Sequence record: NC_009760.1
Strand: one strand, 5' to 3'
DNA: 64,000 nucleotides
A model generated the notes under the pieces. It worked only from the letters and a program-made list of their open reading frames with translations, had not been told where the DNA came from and ran no database searches. Both the position numbers and the translations under genes were made by a program. This document shows, piece after piece, positions 50,664 to 57,874 of the stretch (positions within the stretch are counted from its first letter, which is position 1; each line of letters starts with the position of its first letter).

Positions 50664-51139
50664 TTTCCAACACTTCCCTTCTTTTTCGCCTAATATCATC
50701 CAATAATGTGACAACTTTGTGAACGTTTAGGTCAAAAAGTAACAAAATGACACTTTTCCGGATAATTATATATATAGTGAGGAGGGTTCTACAGGGGTCA
50801 GCGACTCGAATCGCTCACAAAAAGAAAAACCTCCCCAAACCACATGGTATAGTGGTCGTGTTCACCTTGCATAAAACATGCAAGACAAAAACCATCACTA
50901 CACACTACAATGAAGTAGGATGTGAGTTTGATAACTTGATACACTCGAACTGAAACTCGCATAGCACTACCGCACAACGAATGACTCAAGTGATTCAAGT
51001 AATTTAAGATGGGGCTATATCTAAGGGGAGAACATCGCTTCGCATACGCTACGCTGAGTCCTCCCCTTTAGAATCCCCTCTCCAATCATCCATAGGATAG
51101 GTTTGTTGGAGAATGTATACTGCGTTCATTTGAAGACAG

Positions 51140-51164
51140 TACAATACACGTCGTGCGAACGACG
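51140..51164 (-). promoter_or_regulatory. hairpin element copy 13
   Basis: TACA-atacacgt-CGTGCGAACG-acg. Confidence 0.7.
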
Positions 51165-51165
51165 A

Positions 51166-51549
51166 TTAACTATGTGACTCCGGTGATTCCATTTCAGATT
51201 CCGATTCATAGTGCAGTTCAGGATTGATGTTATTATCAACAATGGATGTAATCTTATCACCGTCGTTATCTGCACCTGCATAGCTTTTCGATGCACGTTC
51301 CTCTGCATCACGTTGAACCATATCACTATAGGCTTCCGCTTCTATATCACGTTGAGCGTCATTCTCCCACATTGGTTCCTCGATAGCCTTACGTAAGTCA
51401 CGCACGATTGTAGGAAGTGCTTGTGCGACTTTAAGAGAATCCATAATGTTTAAGCCTTCGATAGAATACTCTAGTTTACCAATTTCAATAGTTGCCTCTT
51501 GCGTTGGGACGTTTACTTTAATACCTTCTACGTTAAATTTAATGTTCAT
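51166..51549 (-). CDS. hypothetical protein
   Basis: ORF with AGGAG. Confidence 0.6.
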   Translation of the reverse strand: MNIKFNVEGIKVNVPTQEATIEIGKLEYSIEGLNIMDSLKVAQALPTIVRDLRKAIEEPMWENDAQRDIEAEAYSDMVQRDAEERASKSYAGADNDGDKITSIVDNNINPELHYESESEMESPESHS

Positions 51550-51639
51550 TATGATTTCCTCCTAAAATGGTTTAGAGCCACGTCGAATGTGACCACGTTT
51601 TTGTTTTTAAAAAATAAAGAGCAGGATCTCCGCTCCGGA

Positions 51640-51846
51640 TTAATAACCAAATGCAATGCGTGCGTCACGAATGAACTCACGTCTGACAGCAGGAGATGCG
51701 TTTTCCCACGCTGGTAACTCTCTGCCCGATAACATAACTCTCGCTCGATAATTAATATACAGGGTACGAGCGTAACCCTTAATTTGATGTTTAACGTCTA
51801 CGATTTCTAATGCTGATACTGTCATGATTGACACTCTCCATTTCAT
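51640..51846 (-). CDS. hypothetical protein
   Basis: Short ORF downstream of copy 14. Confidence 0.55.
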   Translation of the reverse strand: MKWRVSIMTVSALEIVDVKHQIKGYARTLYINYRARVMLSGRELPAWENASPAVRREFIRDARIAFGY

Positions 51847-51869
51847 ATGTAATTTTCAAAGAACAATAA

Positions 51870-51895
51870 TACATAACAAGCCGTGCGAACGGCTG
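51870..51895 (-). promoter_or_regulatory. hairpin element copy 14
   Basis: TACA-taacaagc-CGTGCGAACG-gct. Confidence 0.7.
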
Positions 51896-51896
51896 A

Positions 51897-52025
51897 TTAA
51901 ACCACTGCTACTGCATAGCCACCACGAATTAAATCGACAGCGACACGCATAGGTACATGAACTTTATCACCTACTGTGAATTTTGCACCATAACCTAATG
52001 AATCAATAATTTTAAGACATAACAT
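51897..52025 (-). CDS. small hypothetical protein (42 aa)
   Basis: MLCLKII... with AGGAGGG; sits between copies 15 and 14. Confidence 0.55.
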   Translation of the reverse strand: MLCLKIIDSLGYGAKFTVGDKVHVPMRVAVDLIRGGYAVAVV

Positions 52026-52048
52026 GCGTGTACCCTCCTATAATAAAA

Positions 52049-52073
52049 TACATAAAAGCCCGTGCGAACGGGC
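52049..52073 (-). promoter_or_regulatory. hairpin element copy 15
   Basis: TACA-taaaagcc-CGTGCGAACG-ggc. Confidence 0.7.
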
Positions 52074-52074
52074 A

Positions 52075-52641
52075 TTACGAGGCGAATAATTTCTCTCCTC
52101 TTCTAACCTTACGCACGAGCTTTCTATTTGGTTCAAGCACAAGCATAGGTAGTTTCTTACGCTGTGCATATTTTAAACAGTTTGTTGTTCCACTAGAACC
52201 ATTCCATACACCAATGATTGCCGTAGCATTATCAACCATATATTCATTACGTGCTTGCATACAACGCATGGTAAAGGGTTGATTACTTACCATCGTTACA
52301 ACATCAGCTTTGGATTTAATCCACTTATAATGCTTGCGTGCTTCTGGTCGCCATTTGTTACCGTGACCTTCATGCGGGACGGCAATCTCTAGTGTGATGT
52401 CGGGATATAACTTACGTGCTTCAATTACAATTTCAGCAGCCCACGTATCGACGCCCAACGCACCACCTGTGATGAAGTGTGCATTCGGATATTTCTTACA
52501 GTATGCTAGTATCTTCTTCGTAAGCCATATATACACCATCTTGTTGTCGGGATTATCTTTATCGAATCCGAACAAGTTCTGCGGGCGTGGGCCTGTAAAT
52601 GTTAATACTTTTCTACCTTGTTGGCGTGGTGTTAATGTCAT
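52075..52641 (-). CDS. SLOG-fold DUF1273/YspA family protein
   Basis: FTGPRP...FITGGALGVDTWAAE...AVPH...ARNEYMVDN...GSSGT. Confidence 0.85.
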   Translation of the reverse strand: MTLTPRQQGRKVLTFTGPRPQNLFGFDKDNPDNKMVYIWLTKKILAYCKKYPNAHFITGGALGVDTWAAEIVIEARKLYPDITLEIAVPHEGHGNKWRPEARKHYKWIKSKADVVTMVSNQPFTMRCMQARNEYMVDNATAIIGVWNGSSGTTNCLKYAQRKKLPMLVLEPNRKLVRKVRRGEKLFAS

Positions 52642-52750
52642 GATTATCGTCCCCTTATCATATTAATAGCGATTGCAAATACTATAAGTCCTATCCAACC
52701 CGGAGGGGTACAGAATATTAATGTTAATGCTGTTGCGATTGCTTCCATGA

Positions 52751-52999
52751 TTACAATACACCATCCTTTAGTTTCCACGTATAAATACCATGAACATCTA
52801 CAGCTTCATCACCCATCAAACGACGAGTTTGTTCTGTATCATCATAGAAATCATCTTTCTTAAACTGTCCAGCTTCACTTAACCATTTCCATGCATATGT
52901 TTCATTAATAGGCATAATAGCTTCATTCGCTTCGATACATATCTGTCTTGCGATTACCTCTCTACTTGGATTATGCATTAAGAACTCTTCAATTGTCAT
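52751..52999 (-). CDS. hypothetical protein
   Basis: Start MTIEE with GGGAG. Confidence 0.55.
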   Translation of the reverse strand: MTIEEFLMHNPSREVIARQICIEANEAIMPINETYAWKWLSEAGQFKKDDFYDDTEQTRRLMGDEAVDVHGIYTWKLKDGVL

Positions 53000-53030
53000 A
53001 GCCACTATCTCCCTTGTTATGTAATAAAAG

Positions 53031-53056
53031 AACAGTCCATGTCGTGCGAACGACAC
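53031..53056 (-). promoter_or_regulatory. hairpin element copy 16
   Basis: AACA-gtccatgt-CGTGCGAACG-aca. Confidence 0.65.
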
Positions 53057-53077
53057 GAACCGTCCTATCTTATACTA

Positions 53078-56000
53078 TTAAGCTTGTTTGCGTAAACCTT
53101 TTGCTTCTACATATAATTCATAGTGAGCAAATTGTAATACTAATGCACGGAATGCAGGATTCATGTTCTCACGGCATACATCGAATACACCTTTAGCAAC
53201 AGCTTTCACACCAACAGATGCTTTACGTCCGTCGCCTAGAACAACAGTTACAACTGCACACTCATGACCAACAGCTAATTTACCAGTTTGTTCAACAGAT
53301 ACACCAGCAACATCCATTGCTTCTGTATCAAATTCTGCTGTCCAGTAGTCAGCACTTAAATCCATAGAGTCAAGAACATCGTTGTTGAAGTTTAATGTGA
53401 ATACTTCTGCTTCTTCTTGGTACTCTTCTGTTTCCATGTCGTCATCCATTTCGATAACTGCTTTTTCTTCTTCCATGTATCCAGTGTAAGCAGGTTCTTC
53501 TACATAGTATGGTTGCTCGTTAACAGATGTTGTAACAACTTCTTCTTGGCGATCCGCAACTTCTGTTACTTCCTCTTTCTTAGCTTTTTGTTTCTTCACT
53601 AGTACACGGTCGAATGTCATTTCTAAGAAGAATGCTTGCACTTCCTTCTCTTTACCTGCACGCTTCGCCATGTAAGTTGGTTCTAATTTATCTAAGTTTG
53701 TTACTGTTAATTCACATGCACCAGTTTCCGCTACGTATTGAGCAACGTTTGCTTTTTGGTCACGAGCAACAGCACCGATACGTTGTTTACCAGTATATAC
53801 GTTCACACGCATTTCACGGTCAACTTTCTTTTGAACAAGACGAATCTTACCTTCGTTCTTTTGTAGTAATGCAAGAACATCATGTGAAGATAAATCTTCG
53901 AACTTCCATCCTTTAATTTCGAATGTAGCGAACTGTTCGATTGGACGCTCAACTTGACGCTTCTCTGCAACAGACTTCGTACCCATGATGATGAACACTT
54001 GACCATTACGTTTGAATGTTTTGTAAGTACCGTTTGGTAATTTAGACTCAACACGGTAGTCTTCACCTTCTGATACATTACGGTAGAACTTTAATTCAGA
54101 AGGTACATCATCAATATGACCATCGAACTGAACTTTACGAAGTTTTGTTTTTGTGTCTGTAGATTTAGACACGTTTAATAATAAACCATCATAGCAAGTT
54201 ACCCACGGGAATGAGATAGACTTACCTTTTGATGTAGATGAGAAATATGTGTGTTGATAAGCAGCACCAGCGATGTCACGGATGTCACCGTCGATAGATT
54301 GTACTGCTCTTGTGTACTTATCCATGATATGAGAAATATGTGCTTGTTCCTCTTCATCAGTTAACTCCATGTCACGCATGTTCATTAACTCTTTACGGTA
54401 AGCACCTTCTAAGTCAGAGATGATAGGACGAATACGATTTACTTCTGCATCGTCAACATCAGCTAAGAACTCAAGTGTGAAGTCAACAGTTGTTTCTTTT
54501 GTTTCTTGCTTGAACTTCGTTTCCATATACTCTTTAACAGCGTTGAATAATTGACCTAACTGAGACTTAGATACGAAAACATTTTTCTCTTTGTTCACTT
54601 TCTTCATTACGTTGAACTGTTTCCAGTGTGGTTGCTCCATGATTTCTACATATTCAGGAACTTCAGGGAAGAATCCAGTTTTAGCGAAGTCAATTGACCA
54701 ACCTTGCATGAAACGTAAGATACAAACAATCTCATCAATACGAGCAGGTGTTAAAGACTCACCATTGATTTTACGCTCTTTCATGATTTTAGGATTGTTC
54801 GCAATATCTTTCCATGCAGTAGACATGTTTGTAATTTCACCAATAGATAATACATCTTCGTTGATGATTGTTGCTAAGTCATACTTGAAGATTTGTGCTT
54901 CTGAGTTCGGGCTTTCACCAGCTTTGAAACCAGCATCATATAACATTGGTAAACCAGTTTCAACTGCATCACAAATCTCGTCGTTCTCAACCATTGCTAC
55001 TTTATCACCATCTGTATCCGCTCCACCCATACGTGGTAATGTATCATCGAACGGGTTCATGATTAAGATGTCTTGGTTAAATACATGGTAAGCAGGTGCA
55101 TCAACAGTGTTTAGTACCACTGCTTCTGATTTATGGATTAATGGAGAACGGAAAGCAGCGAAGCGTGACTCTACTCCATTGTAGTAATATTCACCAGCTT
55201 TAAGTACAGCTTTTCTGCCGAACTGTAATTCAGGGCATGTAACGATATAAGGGTTCGCACCTTTCACTGGGATACGTCCTTTCGCCATGTCACCCACATA
55301 CTTCTCACGAGTTTTACGGATTGTTTCTTGTACGAAACGCTCACCAATCATGTCAGGATTCTCCGTTAATAACTCGATAACTTTTTGAATCTTACCACCT
55401 GCGGCATTCATCTTCTTATCGTACTCACCAGCATCACGTCCAGTGTCATACATACCTAAGAATGCTTTTGCATCATCAGCGTTAGAGAAGATAGTTTCTT
55501 TTAACTCTTTTAATGCACGTCCTGCGAATGTCTTAGGAGAAATCTTGTCATTGCGAAGTGCTTGCCAATATTGGTAACCCATGAACACTGTATCGTTTAA
55601 GCGGTTCTTCTGCCATAATACAATCTCAAGTTTTACACGTTTCTCTGATGGACACTCTTCACTCACGTAGTAAGGATTGAAGTTTTCTTTCCACATTGAA
55701 TCAGTGAACATGATGTCTTTCGTGAAGTCATACTTGTGTGTCTTCTCACCGAAGAACTCCATGCATTTACCAGTGTTACGAGTCTTACGTCCGTTGCAGT
55801 CTTTTGTCTCAAGGTTATGTGGGTATACAAGTAATAAACCTTTAGTGAAACCGAAACGAATTTGGAATGCAGATGGTACTTTACTCCATACTTTAAGGAA
55901 CTCTTCGTTACCTTCTACTTCTGCAATACGTACATCTTGGTTATAGATTTCTAACCAGTCTAATAACATTTCACGTTCGTTACGAGAGATTAACTCAAGA

Positions 56001-56734
56001 CGATGTGCTGTACGAACTGCGGCACTCGGTAACATTGTACCTTGACCATCTAATGGCTCGTAAGTATCAACATGTTGTTTGTATGTGCTTAGTTTACGAG
56101 TCTTCCAGTCATATACTTTGATGTCATGTTTACGTTCGATAGCGTAGTCAGGCATAATGTCGAATGAGAAGTCTTCGTTCGTGATCTCAATCGTTGATGA
56201 CTCTGCTAAACCGTAACGTGCTTCCATGTTTGCAATCTTCACTTCTTCCGGGAACTCTGCACCATAAGATACACCATCACGTACTTCTTTCACTGGTAAG
56301 CTAGTCATTAGACGTTTACCTACACGAGTCTGTGATGCTGATGTTAATACACGACGATATACTACACGAGTGCCGTCTAACTTAACGATAGTTAAACCTT
56401 TCTTTAGAATACGACGAATAGCAAGTTTCGCACTCTCTTTATCTTCTTTAGATAAACCACCATATGAGAAGTTCACTACAATGAACTCTTCTGCAAGACG
56501 TACAGTTACTTCTTCGTTCAGTTCGTTGCCGTTCTCATCAACAATAGTCTTAACACGTACTTCTGTCTTATGAGAGAACATACGGAATGCACGGTTTTCT
56601 GATACGAATGTTTTCACTGATTTGAATCCACGTTGACCATAGTTTGCTTCATAGAATACATAGTCACGTCCCTCTGCTTGTACATCTGCGATATTGATAA
56701 TTCCTACTTCAAATTGATTACGTTTCTTAGCCAT
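53078..56734 (-). CDS. YonO-like single-subunit two-barrel RNA polymerase (eukaryotic RdRP-like fold)
   Basis: TSASQTR, DGQG, SAFQIRFGFTKGLL, FRSPLIH and the catalytic MGGADTDGD (DxDGD) motif; start MAKKR with AGGTGG. Confidence 0.88.
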   Translation of the reverse strand: MAKKRNQFEVGIINIADVQAEGRDYVFYEANYGQRGFKSVKTFVSENRAFRMFSHKTEVRVKTIVDENGNELNEEVTVRLAEEFIVVNFSYGGLSKEDKESAKLAIRRILKKGLTIVKLDGTRVVYRRVLTSASQTRVGKRLMTSLPVKEVRDGVSYGAEFPEEVKIANMEARYGLAESSTIEITNEDFSFDIMPDYAIERKHDIKVYDWKTRKLSTYKQHVDTYEPLDGQGTMLPSAAVRTAHRLELISRNEREMLLDWLEIYNQDVRIAEVEGNEEFLKVWSKVPSAFQIRFGFTKGLLLVYPHNLETKDCNGRKTRNTGKCMEFFGEKTHKYDFTKDIMFTDSMWKENFNPYYVSEECPSEKRVKLEIVLWQKNRLNDTVFMGYQYWQALRNDKISPKTFAGRALKELKETIFSNADDAKAFLGMYDTGRDAGEYDKKMNAAGGKIQKVIELLTENPDMIGERFVQETIRKTREKYVGDMAKGRIPVKGANPYIVTCPELQFGRKAVLKAGEYYYNGVESRFAAFRSPLIHKSEAVVLNTVDAPAYHVFNQDILIMNPFDDTLPRMGGADTDGDKVAMVENDEICDAVETGLPMLYDAGFKAGESPNSEAQIFKYDLATIINEDVLSIGEITNMSTAWKDIANNPKIMKERKINGESLTPARIDEIVCILRFMQGWSIDFAKTGFFPEVPEYVEIMEQPHWKQFNVMKKVNKEKNVFVSKSQLGQLFNAVKEYMETKFKQETKETTVDFTLEFLADVDDAEVNRIRPIISDLEGAYRKELMNMRDMELTDEEEQAHISHIMDKYTRAVQSIDGDIRDIAGAAYQHTYFSSTSKGKSISFPWVTCYDGLLLNVSKSTDTKTKLRKVQFDGHIDDVPSELKFYRNVSEGEDYRVESKLPNGTYKTFKRNGQVFIIMGTKSVAEKRQVERPIEQFATFEIKGWKFEDLSSHDVLALLQKNEGKIRLVQKKVDREMRVNVYTGKQRIGAVARDQKANVAQYVAETGACELTVTNLDKLEPTYMAKRAGKEKEVQAFFLEMTFDRVLVKKQKAKKEEVTEVADRQEEVVTTSVNEQPYYVEEPAYTGYMEEEKAVIEMDDDMETEEYQEEAEVFTLNFNNDVLDSMDLSADYWTAEFDTEAMDVAGVSVEQTGKLAVGHECAVVTVVLGDGRKASVGVKAVAKGVFDVCRENMNPAFRALVLQFAHYELYVEAKGLRKQA

Positions 56735-56819
56735 GATAAATTCCACCTTTTCATTTTTTATAGTTTTATAGTTTGATTCATACTCTGTCGTGTCTTGGGC
56801 GGACACAACAATCATCACT

Positions 56820-56847
56820 TACACGCCCAACCGTGCGAACGGTGGGC
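56820..56847 (-). promoter_or_regulatory. hairpin element copy 17 (upstream of the RNAP gene)
   Basis: TACA-cgcccaac-CGTGCGAACG-gtgggc. Confidence 0.7.
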
Positions 56848-57294
56848 ATAACGTGCGTGATACTAACTTTCGGATTTCATTACGCTGACATTATGCCAAC
56901 TTCAATCGTTCTCTTGTGCGTTTGTCGTCCATCTCTATAGCGTAACGAACAATCGCTGGTCGATATTTGATATATAATGCATATATCTCCTTATCGCTCT
57001 TATACTCATACCAGTGGTCGGCATAAGGAAGTATAACCATCAACTTCTCTATCATGCCTTGCACTTCTCTGCTGCGAGCAAGTCGCTGACCGTAATACAT
57101 AACACTCACCTCCTTTCAATTTCGCGGGCGACATAACGTACCCGATACTAAGAATATCTATATAAACCTCCTATACATACATAAGACATATAAGAGAGGA
57201 AAGACATAACGTGTGCGATACTGTGAATACATAACACATGCGATACTAGAATGACATAACGTACGTGATACGAGAGACATAACGTGTGCGATAC
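56847..57294. repeat. six copies of 17-bp CATAAC(GT/AC)-N4-GATAC
   Basis: Copies at 56847, 57132, 57205, 57230, 57255 and 57278. Confidence 0.85.
56891..57100 (-). CDS. small hypothetical protein
   Basis: Start MYYGQ with GGAGGTGA. Confidence 0.6.
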   Translation of the reverse strand: MYYGQRLARSREVQGMIEKLMVILPYADHWYEYKSDKEIYALYIKYRPAIVRYAIEMDDKRTRERLKLA

Positions 57295-57579
57295 TGACTC
57301 TATATATAAGAGACACATATGAGAGTGTCTTGAATGACTTAGGTAACAATTTAGATACACTTAGGATATATAACAACCTAACACTTGAATGACTTGTGTG
57401 TGACAACACACAAGAGAAATACCTCCCAACCATGTTCAGCGTATGCTACGACTGTGCTTATCCACGTTTGGTACGACGAACCATAAATGGTACAACGTCC
57501 CAGTTTCCTTGAGTGACTTGTGGAGCAGGGAGAGAAAGGGACGAAAAGAAAACTATTTCGCCCATATACGTTCGTCGAT

Positions 57580-57606
57580 TGCCCGATGATGCGTGCGAAC
57601 GCAATC
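57580..57606 (-). promoter_or_regulatory. hairpin element copy 18 (exact core, degenerate TACA box)
   Basis: TGCC-cgatgatg-CGTGCGAACG-caatc. Confidence 0.45.
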
Positions 57607-57874
57607 ATATAAAGCATCAAGCGTGCGAATGCGTTTCGAATGAAAGCAATGCGACGCAAAATGAAGATGCCATATATACAGGGACGACGAACCATAACTG
57701 GTAGAGCGTACCAGTTGTACAAGAACGACGCTGGGTGGTGAACGGCTCGCTCTGCTCGCCGTCGTAGGTCACTGCGTTTCCCCACAACACCCTTCCTGCG
57801 AATACGCCGGAGGCGGGGTATCACACAAGCAGAACCTCTATTGACTGCGAACACGGTCTGAATGTACGACCGTA

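Follow-up and report, generated by a model that had tools for sequence, protein, structure and literature searches.

YonO, encoded by the Bacillus prophage SPbeta, is a described DNA-dependent RNA polymerase made of one two-barrel peptide and shares with the enzyme considered here its Pfam family, its catalytic residues, its origin in a Bacillus phage and its non-virion nature (PMC5467207). Its promoter and any factor requirement were left undefined by Forrest et al. in 2017 (PMC5467207), and promoter finding by single-chain polymerases of the YonO type is an open question. The enzyme considered here is gp99, the product of orf99 in phage 0305phi8-36 (EF583821 / NC_009760), whose host is Bacillus thuringiensis. 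The DNA analysed, called the window below, is a stretch of 64,000 nucleotides (nt) with 100% identity to this phage, corresponding to the right end, the last 64 kb, of the 218,948-base-pair (bp) genome, with the right terminal repeat inside. Beyond a standard polymerase body, gp99 carries a module that models as HIRAN-like, a basic neighbour, an acidic linker and an end domain, which together are a new, conserved variant of the YonO architecture.

The polymerase identity of gp99 and the idea of a promoter motif are already known. Hardies, Thomas and Serwer described gp99 in 2007 as a putative novel RNA polymerase of the Pfam RdRP type, reported a phage-specific 21-bp motif, a promoter candidate, whose 14 copies they proposed as its targets and recognised no sigma factor in the genome (PMC2147016). 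Ruprich-Robert and Thuriaux placed a similar open reading frame (ORF) of 0305phi8-36 among the YonO-like proteins in 2010 (PMC2919709), and Iyer et al. named gp99 (ABS83659.1) a YonO-like enzyme in 2021 (PMC7824862); a HIRAN domain in gp99 is described in neither of these two papers. The annotation of ORF099/gp99 in EF583821 reads hypothetical DNA-directed RNA polymerase, similar to Pfam05183. A literature search found no paper that ties HIRAN to this polymerase family or reports it fused to an RNA polymerase.

A second system for comparison is coliphage N4, whose virion RNA polymerase is T7-like, packed in the virion and directed to DNA-hairpin promoters. The two phages have in common short hairpins with a conserved loop, placed few bases before the presumed start, strand-specific and proposed as targets of a single-chain polymerase; a conserved hairpin before genes, with its structure under selection, is found in 0305phi8-36 as in the N4 type. 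However, gp99 is of the two-barrel type and stands outside the published virion proteins, and the hairpins of 0305phi8-36 are known from sequence, their extrusion being only proposed. Packaging in the N4 style, which an earlier note on this stretch had raised, is unlikely, as the published proteome lists only orfs 205, 209 and 81 as right-arm virion genes and orf99 is absent from them (PMC2147016). Finally, QDE-1, gp66 of phi14:2, a crAss-like phage, and gp96 and gp64 of Thermus phage P23-45 (PMC10770324) share the catalytic architecture of gp99; the difference is that the text of that paper, as searched, mentions no hairpin and that no report of a HIRAN-like module in them was found in the literature.

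The polymerase body and the start of orf99

On the minus strand, the open frame extends over 53078-56818 (record positions 208026-211766), and the ATG at 56734, where every homologue starts, gives a protein of 1218 amino acids (aa). A longer version beginning with GTG at 56818 was ruled out, because it would overlap the hairpin upstream of the gene and no homologue reaches that far.

The Pfam RdRP family PF05183 matches residues 46-733 of gp99 with 67.6 bits, compared to a gathering cut-off of 23.8 (E 1.2e-18), and phrog_8308 matches residues 103-812. Profile alignment with hhalign sets residues 75-697 against residues 106-640 of a SPbeta-type YonO of 841 aa, and the PDB sequence matches of the body are RdRP relatives only, weak and to plant RdRPs. 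For comparison, 16 full-length relatives of 1169-1271 aa were used, several of them from phage contigs of about 210 kb; across the 16 proteins, R293, K298, R529, P531 and the aspartates D573, D575 and D577, together with D267, are unchanged and have a spacing like that of QDE-1. The hallmarks of two-barrel polymerases, namely the DxDGD triad, one more aspartate, an R...K pair and R-x-P (PMC2919709), are thus all present. The strings SAFQIRFGFTKG, RSP..H and GGADTDGD, from which the earlier note had recognised a YonO-like polymerase of the RdRP type, are all found in gp99, and the family match and the invariant catalytic residues bear this assignment out; its remark that SPbeta YonO is considerably shorter agrees with the 841 aa of the SPbeta-type protein against the 1218 aa of gp99. 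Judged by these comparisons, gp99 belongs to the YonO/RdRP family of two-barrel RNA polymerases and works as a single chain; DNA-templated RNA synthesis, demonstrated only for YonO itself, is predicted for it.

Following the catalytic part, an acidic helical bundle (residues 748-855) matches residues 1196-1338 of QDE-1 with a Z score of 6.7 and maize RDR2 with 5.7, and it is therefore counted in the standard body of the RdRP type.

Added modules and the HIRAN-like domain

The C-terminus of gp99 (residues 735-1218), modelled with AlphaFold, has five parts: the helical bundle, a beta domain, an alpha/beta domain, a disordered linker and an end domain. Beyond the standard body, which covers residues 1 to about 860, gp99 consists of four added parts. 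The whole C-terminus is common to the 16 relatives. Compared to YonO, gp99 is about 380 aa longer, and its beta, HIRAN-like, linker and end parts have no detectable counterpart there; no similarity to the added modules was detected in BUCT082 (924 aa) or Perkons (857 aa) either. The beta domain is basic in all 16 proteins (isoelectric point, pI, 9.3-9.9) and the alpha/beta domain in 14 of them; an acidic character is found in the body, in the helical part and in the linker (pI 4.1). The linker varies from 21 to 87 aa among the relatives. The order read earlier from the translation, in which the HIRAN-like segment is followed by an acidic linker and then by another small domain, agrees with the model, where residues 1048-1117 are disordered and 1118-1217 folded.

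In a profile search of 1.8 billion proteins, the HIRAN-like domain was found almost only in RdRP-type proteins of 1200-1325 aa, besides a few short proteins with the domain and without a Pfam match; in the AlphaFold DB, an RdRP of 974 aa has the helical, beta and HIRAN-like parts in common with gp99 (E 1.6e-9). A scan of IMG/VR found no relatives. As a separate observation, a 206.5-kb element of Paenibacillus sp. EC2-1 named 'plasmid pla' (NZ_CP186007.1, 83486-90412) encodes a polymerase C-terminus of 40% identity that includes the HIRAN-like domain, and this element may be a phage like 0305phi8-36 that is maintained in plasmid form, or else a phage whose sequence was assembled together with that of its host.

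Regarding the fold, residues 935-1044 modelled alone reach a predicted local distance difference test (pLDDT) value of 88.7 and a predicted template-modelling (pTM) score of 0.80. A Foldseek-independent search of 48,161 PDB chains placed HIRAN structures at ranks 1 to 3, namely 3k2y (Z 8.2, 98 of 103 residues), the HLTF HIRAN 4xzg (Z 5.9) and residues 181-294 of Rad5 (Z 5.5), with 91-98 residues covered and the next match at 4.0. A reference profile, built from 11 HIRAN domains that Pfam recognises in Bacilli genomes, matches 3k2y at 4e-13 and HLTF at 6e-10, so 3k2y is a HIRAN domain by sequence; against the same 11 domains, hhalign gives gp99 a probability of 85% (E 6e-6, 74 columns). Among the AlphaFold DB clusters, proteins named HIRAN take ranks 1, 3, 7, 13, 24, 27 and 28 of the top 30 (best E 2.5e-4), and 78 of 100 feature matches in the ESM Atlas fall in PF08797 clusters. 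Foldseek against the PDB gave nothing significant with both models, and HMMER against the HIRAN chains in the PDB gave no match for the gp99 domain; the HIRAN match emerged with the AlphaFold DB clusters and the Foldseek-independent search. By its model, the domain has a HIRAN-like fold, and it is probably a remote homologue of HIRAN.

The likeness to the HIRAN domains of PF08797 (human HLTF, yeast Rad5 and lp_0118 of L. plantarum) thus covers the order of strands and helices, the V..G..(I/V)G.V.R pattern and the same fold by four independent comparisons. The difference is that the gp99 domain lacks both a Pfam match and the conserved N-P-x-D and A positions. Pfam HIRAN (cut-off 24.7 bits) has no match at E up to 10 in the C-terminal pieces, and none in the six frames of the whole phage genome. 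N45, D48 and A51 are invariant in the 11 bacterial HIRAN domains, and hhalign sets the N-P-x-D/A positions against D48, a gap, R49 and R52 of the gp99 domain, which are unconserved in the gp99 family. In HLTF, the N-P-x-D and A signature forms the 3'-OH pocket. Since this signature and the Pfam match are lacking, a canonical pocket for 3' ends is not to be assumed in gp99, and neither is the binding of single-stranded DNA 3' ends that the earlier note cites for HIRAN domains. The HIRAN-pattern segment that the note placed at about 53690-53935 corresponds to the folded HIRAN-like domain at 53603-53932. Fold and profile comparisons of this domain return HIRAN in the AlphaFold DB, in the Foldseek-independent PDB search and by profile-profile alignment, while the Pfam model and the signature fail and Foldseek against the PDB is blank.

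It might be that nucleic acid is bound by the HIRAN-like domain and the beta domain without the promoter being among their targets, with promoter choice residing in the body or in a separate phage factor. Proposed ligands are a DNA or RNA 3' end, as in end-initiated synthesis of the QDE-1 kind, the non-template strand or the nascent RNA, with a role in processivity or R-loop control. This is consistent with the structural matches being HIRAN domains of HLTF and Rad5, with RdRP relatives being the sole PDB sequence matches of the body, with the undefined factor requirement of YonO (PMC5467207) and with the basic charge of both domains. However, the 3'-OH pocket signature is unconserved, and neither a candidate for a separate factor was found in this analysis nor a recognised sigma factor by Hardies et al. 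(PMC2147016). We hold this possibility to be unlikely on balance, with a real share of the probability.

Searches with the C-terminal pieces in Pfam, PHROGs and PDB sequences returned nothing usable, and weak SNF7 matches were dismissed as coiled-coil noise. For the beta domain, neither Pfam, PHROGs nor the ESM Atlas provided a family or fold match; the helical part likewise had no leads in the ESM Atlas, and the end domain gave weak leads only, kinase N-lobe fragments at 0.84. That neither the end nor the beta domain has an identifiable nucleic-acid-binding fold (ESM Atlas, structure search), together with an acidic linker that resembles the tethers of many scaffold proteins, would suit C-terminal modules that are protein-binding adaptors, for instance to a host factor, to the replisome or to the machinery of DNA entry, and take no part in nucleic-acid recognition. 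With a HIRAN-like fold and a consistent basic charge of two modules speaking against it, this idea appears highly improbable.

The hairpin motif and the control of orf99

Within the window, the minus strand carries all 17 exact copies of the core CGTTCGCACG and one more copy with a single mismatch, where about 0.1 would be expected by chance; genome-wide there are 19 exact copies, each of them in the right arm and on its coding strand. A site takes the form of a hairpin of 6-9 bp, in which the top is always CGT-TCGC-ACG, followed 8 nt on by a TGTA box. TGTA or TGTT stands at exactly this distance past the core in 16 copies, often with a ribosome site directly after. The stem is paired at 94% over 17 aligned copies, and three variable stem pairs show double changes in 9-10 copies each, giving a covariation of 0.653; the value for shuffles is 0.153, and none of the 500 made is as high.

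Two cores 30 nt apart, at 57592-57601 and at 57622-57631 of the minus strand, are found a short way into the terminal repeat (start at 57522); both are without a TGTA box and are duplicated at the left end of the genome.

The loop differs between phages, being TAGC in the relatives L002 and L005, and TRGC in L003, where the downstream box is different and copies occur without a T run. As the element is kept and its loop is phage-specific, the pattern suits a co-evolving pair of polymerase and promoter; the six phages in which motif and domains were compared are too few to assign the part of the enzyme that tracks the loop.

RNA-level or termination signals would be another explanation of these hairpins, as intrinsic terminators, insulators between short transcripts or sites of phage RNA-binding regulators. 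The copy upstream of orf99 would then be the end of the orf100 transcript and there would be no autoregulation. The covariation fits an RNA hairpin as well as a DNA hairpin, and most copies have a G+C-rich stem followed by a T-rich run, similar to an intrinsic terminator. Directly past the orf99 stop, the long hairpin at 53029..53066 is terminator-like for orf99 and at the same time a candidate promoter for orf98, and the element before the polymerase gene of L002 is a plain hairpin plus T5. Termination, however, needs neither an invariant stem top and loop nor TGTA at a fixed distance; the copies c38249, c51152, c53043 and c56832 and those of L003 lack the T run, and in many copies the ribosome site follows TGTA by 2-25 nt, which leaves no space for another promoter. 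We consider this explanation rather unlikely.

The reading that we favour, tentatively and somewhat short of an even chance, is that of a polymerase with added modules that uses the hairpin sites via a basic specificity module. gp99 would be an enzyme from outside the virion that is expressed early, from the genome's right end, and would transcribe the right-arm genes from about 18 phage-specific hairpin/TGTA sites, usually directly before the ribosome site. More speculatively, the two basic domains might be a built-in specificity module replacing a sigma factor and gripping the extruded or melted hairpin strand, with the HIRAN pocket re-used for unpaired bases in place of the 3'-OH end, and the acidic linker and end domain might turn back and serve as a regulator or DNA mimic. 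Fold, charge and co-occurrence make it plausible that the hairpin is read by the tail of gp99, a claim that we rate as doubtful. That a clade of jumbo phages of the Bacillus group has a sigma-free two-barrel polymerase with a built-in, HIRAN-derived reader of extruded DNA-hairpin promoters, a basic beta neighbour and an acidic linker as internal DNA mimic is decidedly unlikely.

Several observations weigh against the favoured reading, besides the missing Pfam match and pocket signature and the terminator-like form of most copies. YonO is active without the added modules of gp99 (PMC5467207). The relative L006 has no CGT....ACG core and another recurrent hairpin (CGG-TGTC-CCG), and in L007 neither the core nor such a hairpin was identified. 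The RNA runs containing near-identical phage are food-fermentation metatranscriptomes of high depth, available as assembled contigs; contig ends were tried as RNA ends and ruled out, since they overlap by 23-30 bases and are therefore assembly joints, yielding no start sites.

The case for autoregulation of orf99 is weak. A hairpin does lie where it had been reported, with its TGTA box ending 86 nt before the ATG, and it is number 17 when the copy with one mismatch is counted; the upstream arrangement is identical in L024, the closest relative. This copy has the canonical core and distance to TGTA, but its spacer is G-rich in place of the usual T-rich one. At the corresponding place L025 and L002 have a degenerate hairpin, and L005 has the core and no TGTA. 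A promoter of the sigma-70 kind was sought 5' of orf99 and none was found. A second repeat, GTATCRCRYRCGTTATGT, adjoins the orf99 hairpin in 0305phi8-36, L024 and L025, and forms an upstream tandem array of 4-5 copies in 0305phi8-36 and L002. As this hairpin copy is atypical and only partly conserved, and a second repeat abuts it, positive autoregulation alone is probably too simple an account of how the polymerase gene is controlled.

Regarding the layout of GTATCRCRYRCGTTATGT, the copies lie at window positions 57132-57295 and 56847-56864 (minus strand): four are in tandem at 25-bp spacing, one stands alone shortly upstream of orf100 and another alone ahead of the orf99 hairpin. The layout in L002 (8874-9332) is as in 0305phi8-36, and the single copy is retained in L024 and L025. 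These repeats are unlike a sigma-70 promoter and could be iterons or operator sites.

In contrast to YonO, with its undefined promoter, 0305phi8-36 has a candidate consensus in 18 copies, and its clade pairs a YonO-type enzyme with a multi-copy candidate promoter of phage-varying loop and a candidate nucleic-acid-binding module. To test the promoter question here, a single protein and short templates of DNA would thus be enough. If the unlikely reading of a phage clade with a HIRAN-derived hairpin reader is true, the YonO family would have its first promoter-recognition mechanism, the N4 hairpin-promoter system would have a convergent twin, and the HIRAN fold would be put to a new use. Provided that the enzyme is specific, compact sigma-independent pairs of polymerase and promoter with differing loops could serve as orthogonal expression tools.

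Feature coordinates and neighbouring genes

Table 1. Features of orf99/gp99 and its surroundings, in window coordinates.
Feature	Position	Strand	Basis
orf99/gp99 coding sequence, 1218 aa + stop	53078..56734	minus	start shared with homologues, EF583821 annotation
Two-barrel polymerase body, residues 46-733	54536..56599	minus	Pfam RdRP PF05183, E 1.2e-18
Catalytic GGADTDGD, residues 570-577	55004..55027	minus	D573, D575, D577 invariant
Acidic helical bundle, residues 748-855	54170..54493	minus	model; QDE-1 and maize RDR2 matches
Small basic beta domain, residues 862-919	53978..54151	minus	model; pI 9.3-9.9 in 16/16
Divergent HIRAN-like domain, residues 935-1044	53603..53932	minus	fold and profile comparisons
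Disordered acidic linker, residues 1048-1117	53384..53593	minus	pI 4.1
C-terminal sheet-plus-helix end domain, residues 1118-1218, invariant AHYE	53081..53383	minus	model, alignment
Ribosome binding site AAGGTGG, 8 nt before orf99 ATG	56743..56749	minus	
Hairpin copy before orf99: core CGTTCGCACG 56832-56841, 8 nt, TGTA 56820-56823	56820..56846	minus	
Second-repeat copy (AGTATCACGCACGTTATG) abutting hairpin	56847..56864	minus	
Long hairpin (17 pairs) with motif copy, 12 nt past orf99 stop	53029..53066	minus	

Metatranscriptome and metagenome runs from food fermentations contain relatives of about 98% identity to window positions 51000-56999, with word depths of 600-2500; these relatives have a longer, different sequence in place of the orf98 region (52781-52961). 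Downstream of the polymerase gene, orf97 (52075-52641, minus strand) is of the YpsA/DUF1273 type and is also found in L002, L003, L024 and L025, with one to two small genes between it and the polymerase gene. Meanwhile, L005, L006 and L007 have genes of the YAcAr type near the polymerase instead. Beside the polymerase, the early region of L003 (17465-18742), L006 (14436-15356) and L007 (17998-18423) contains NADAR/DarT-associated, RNase H, Macro and Acb2/Tad1-like genes, which suggests an anti-defence gene island in these three phages.

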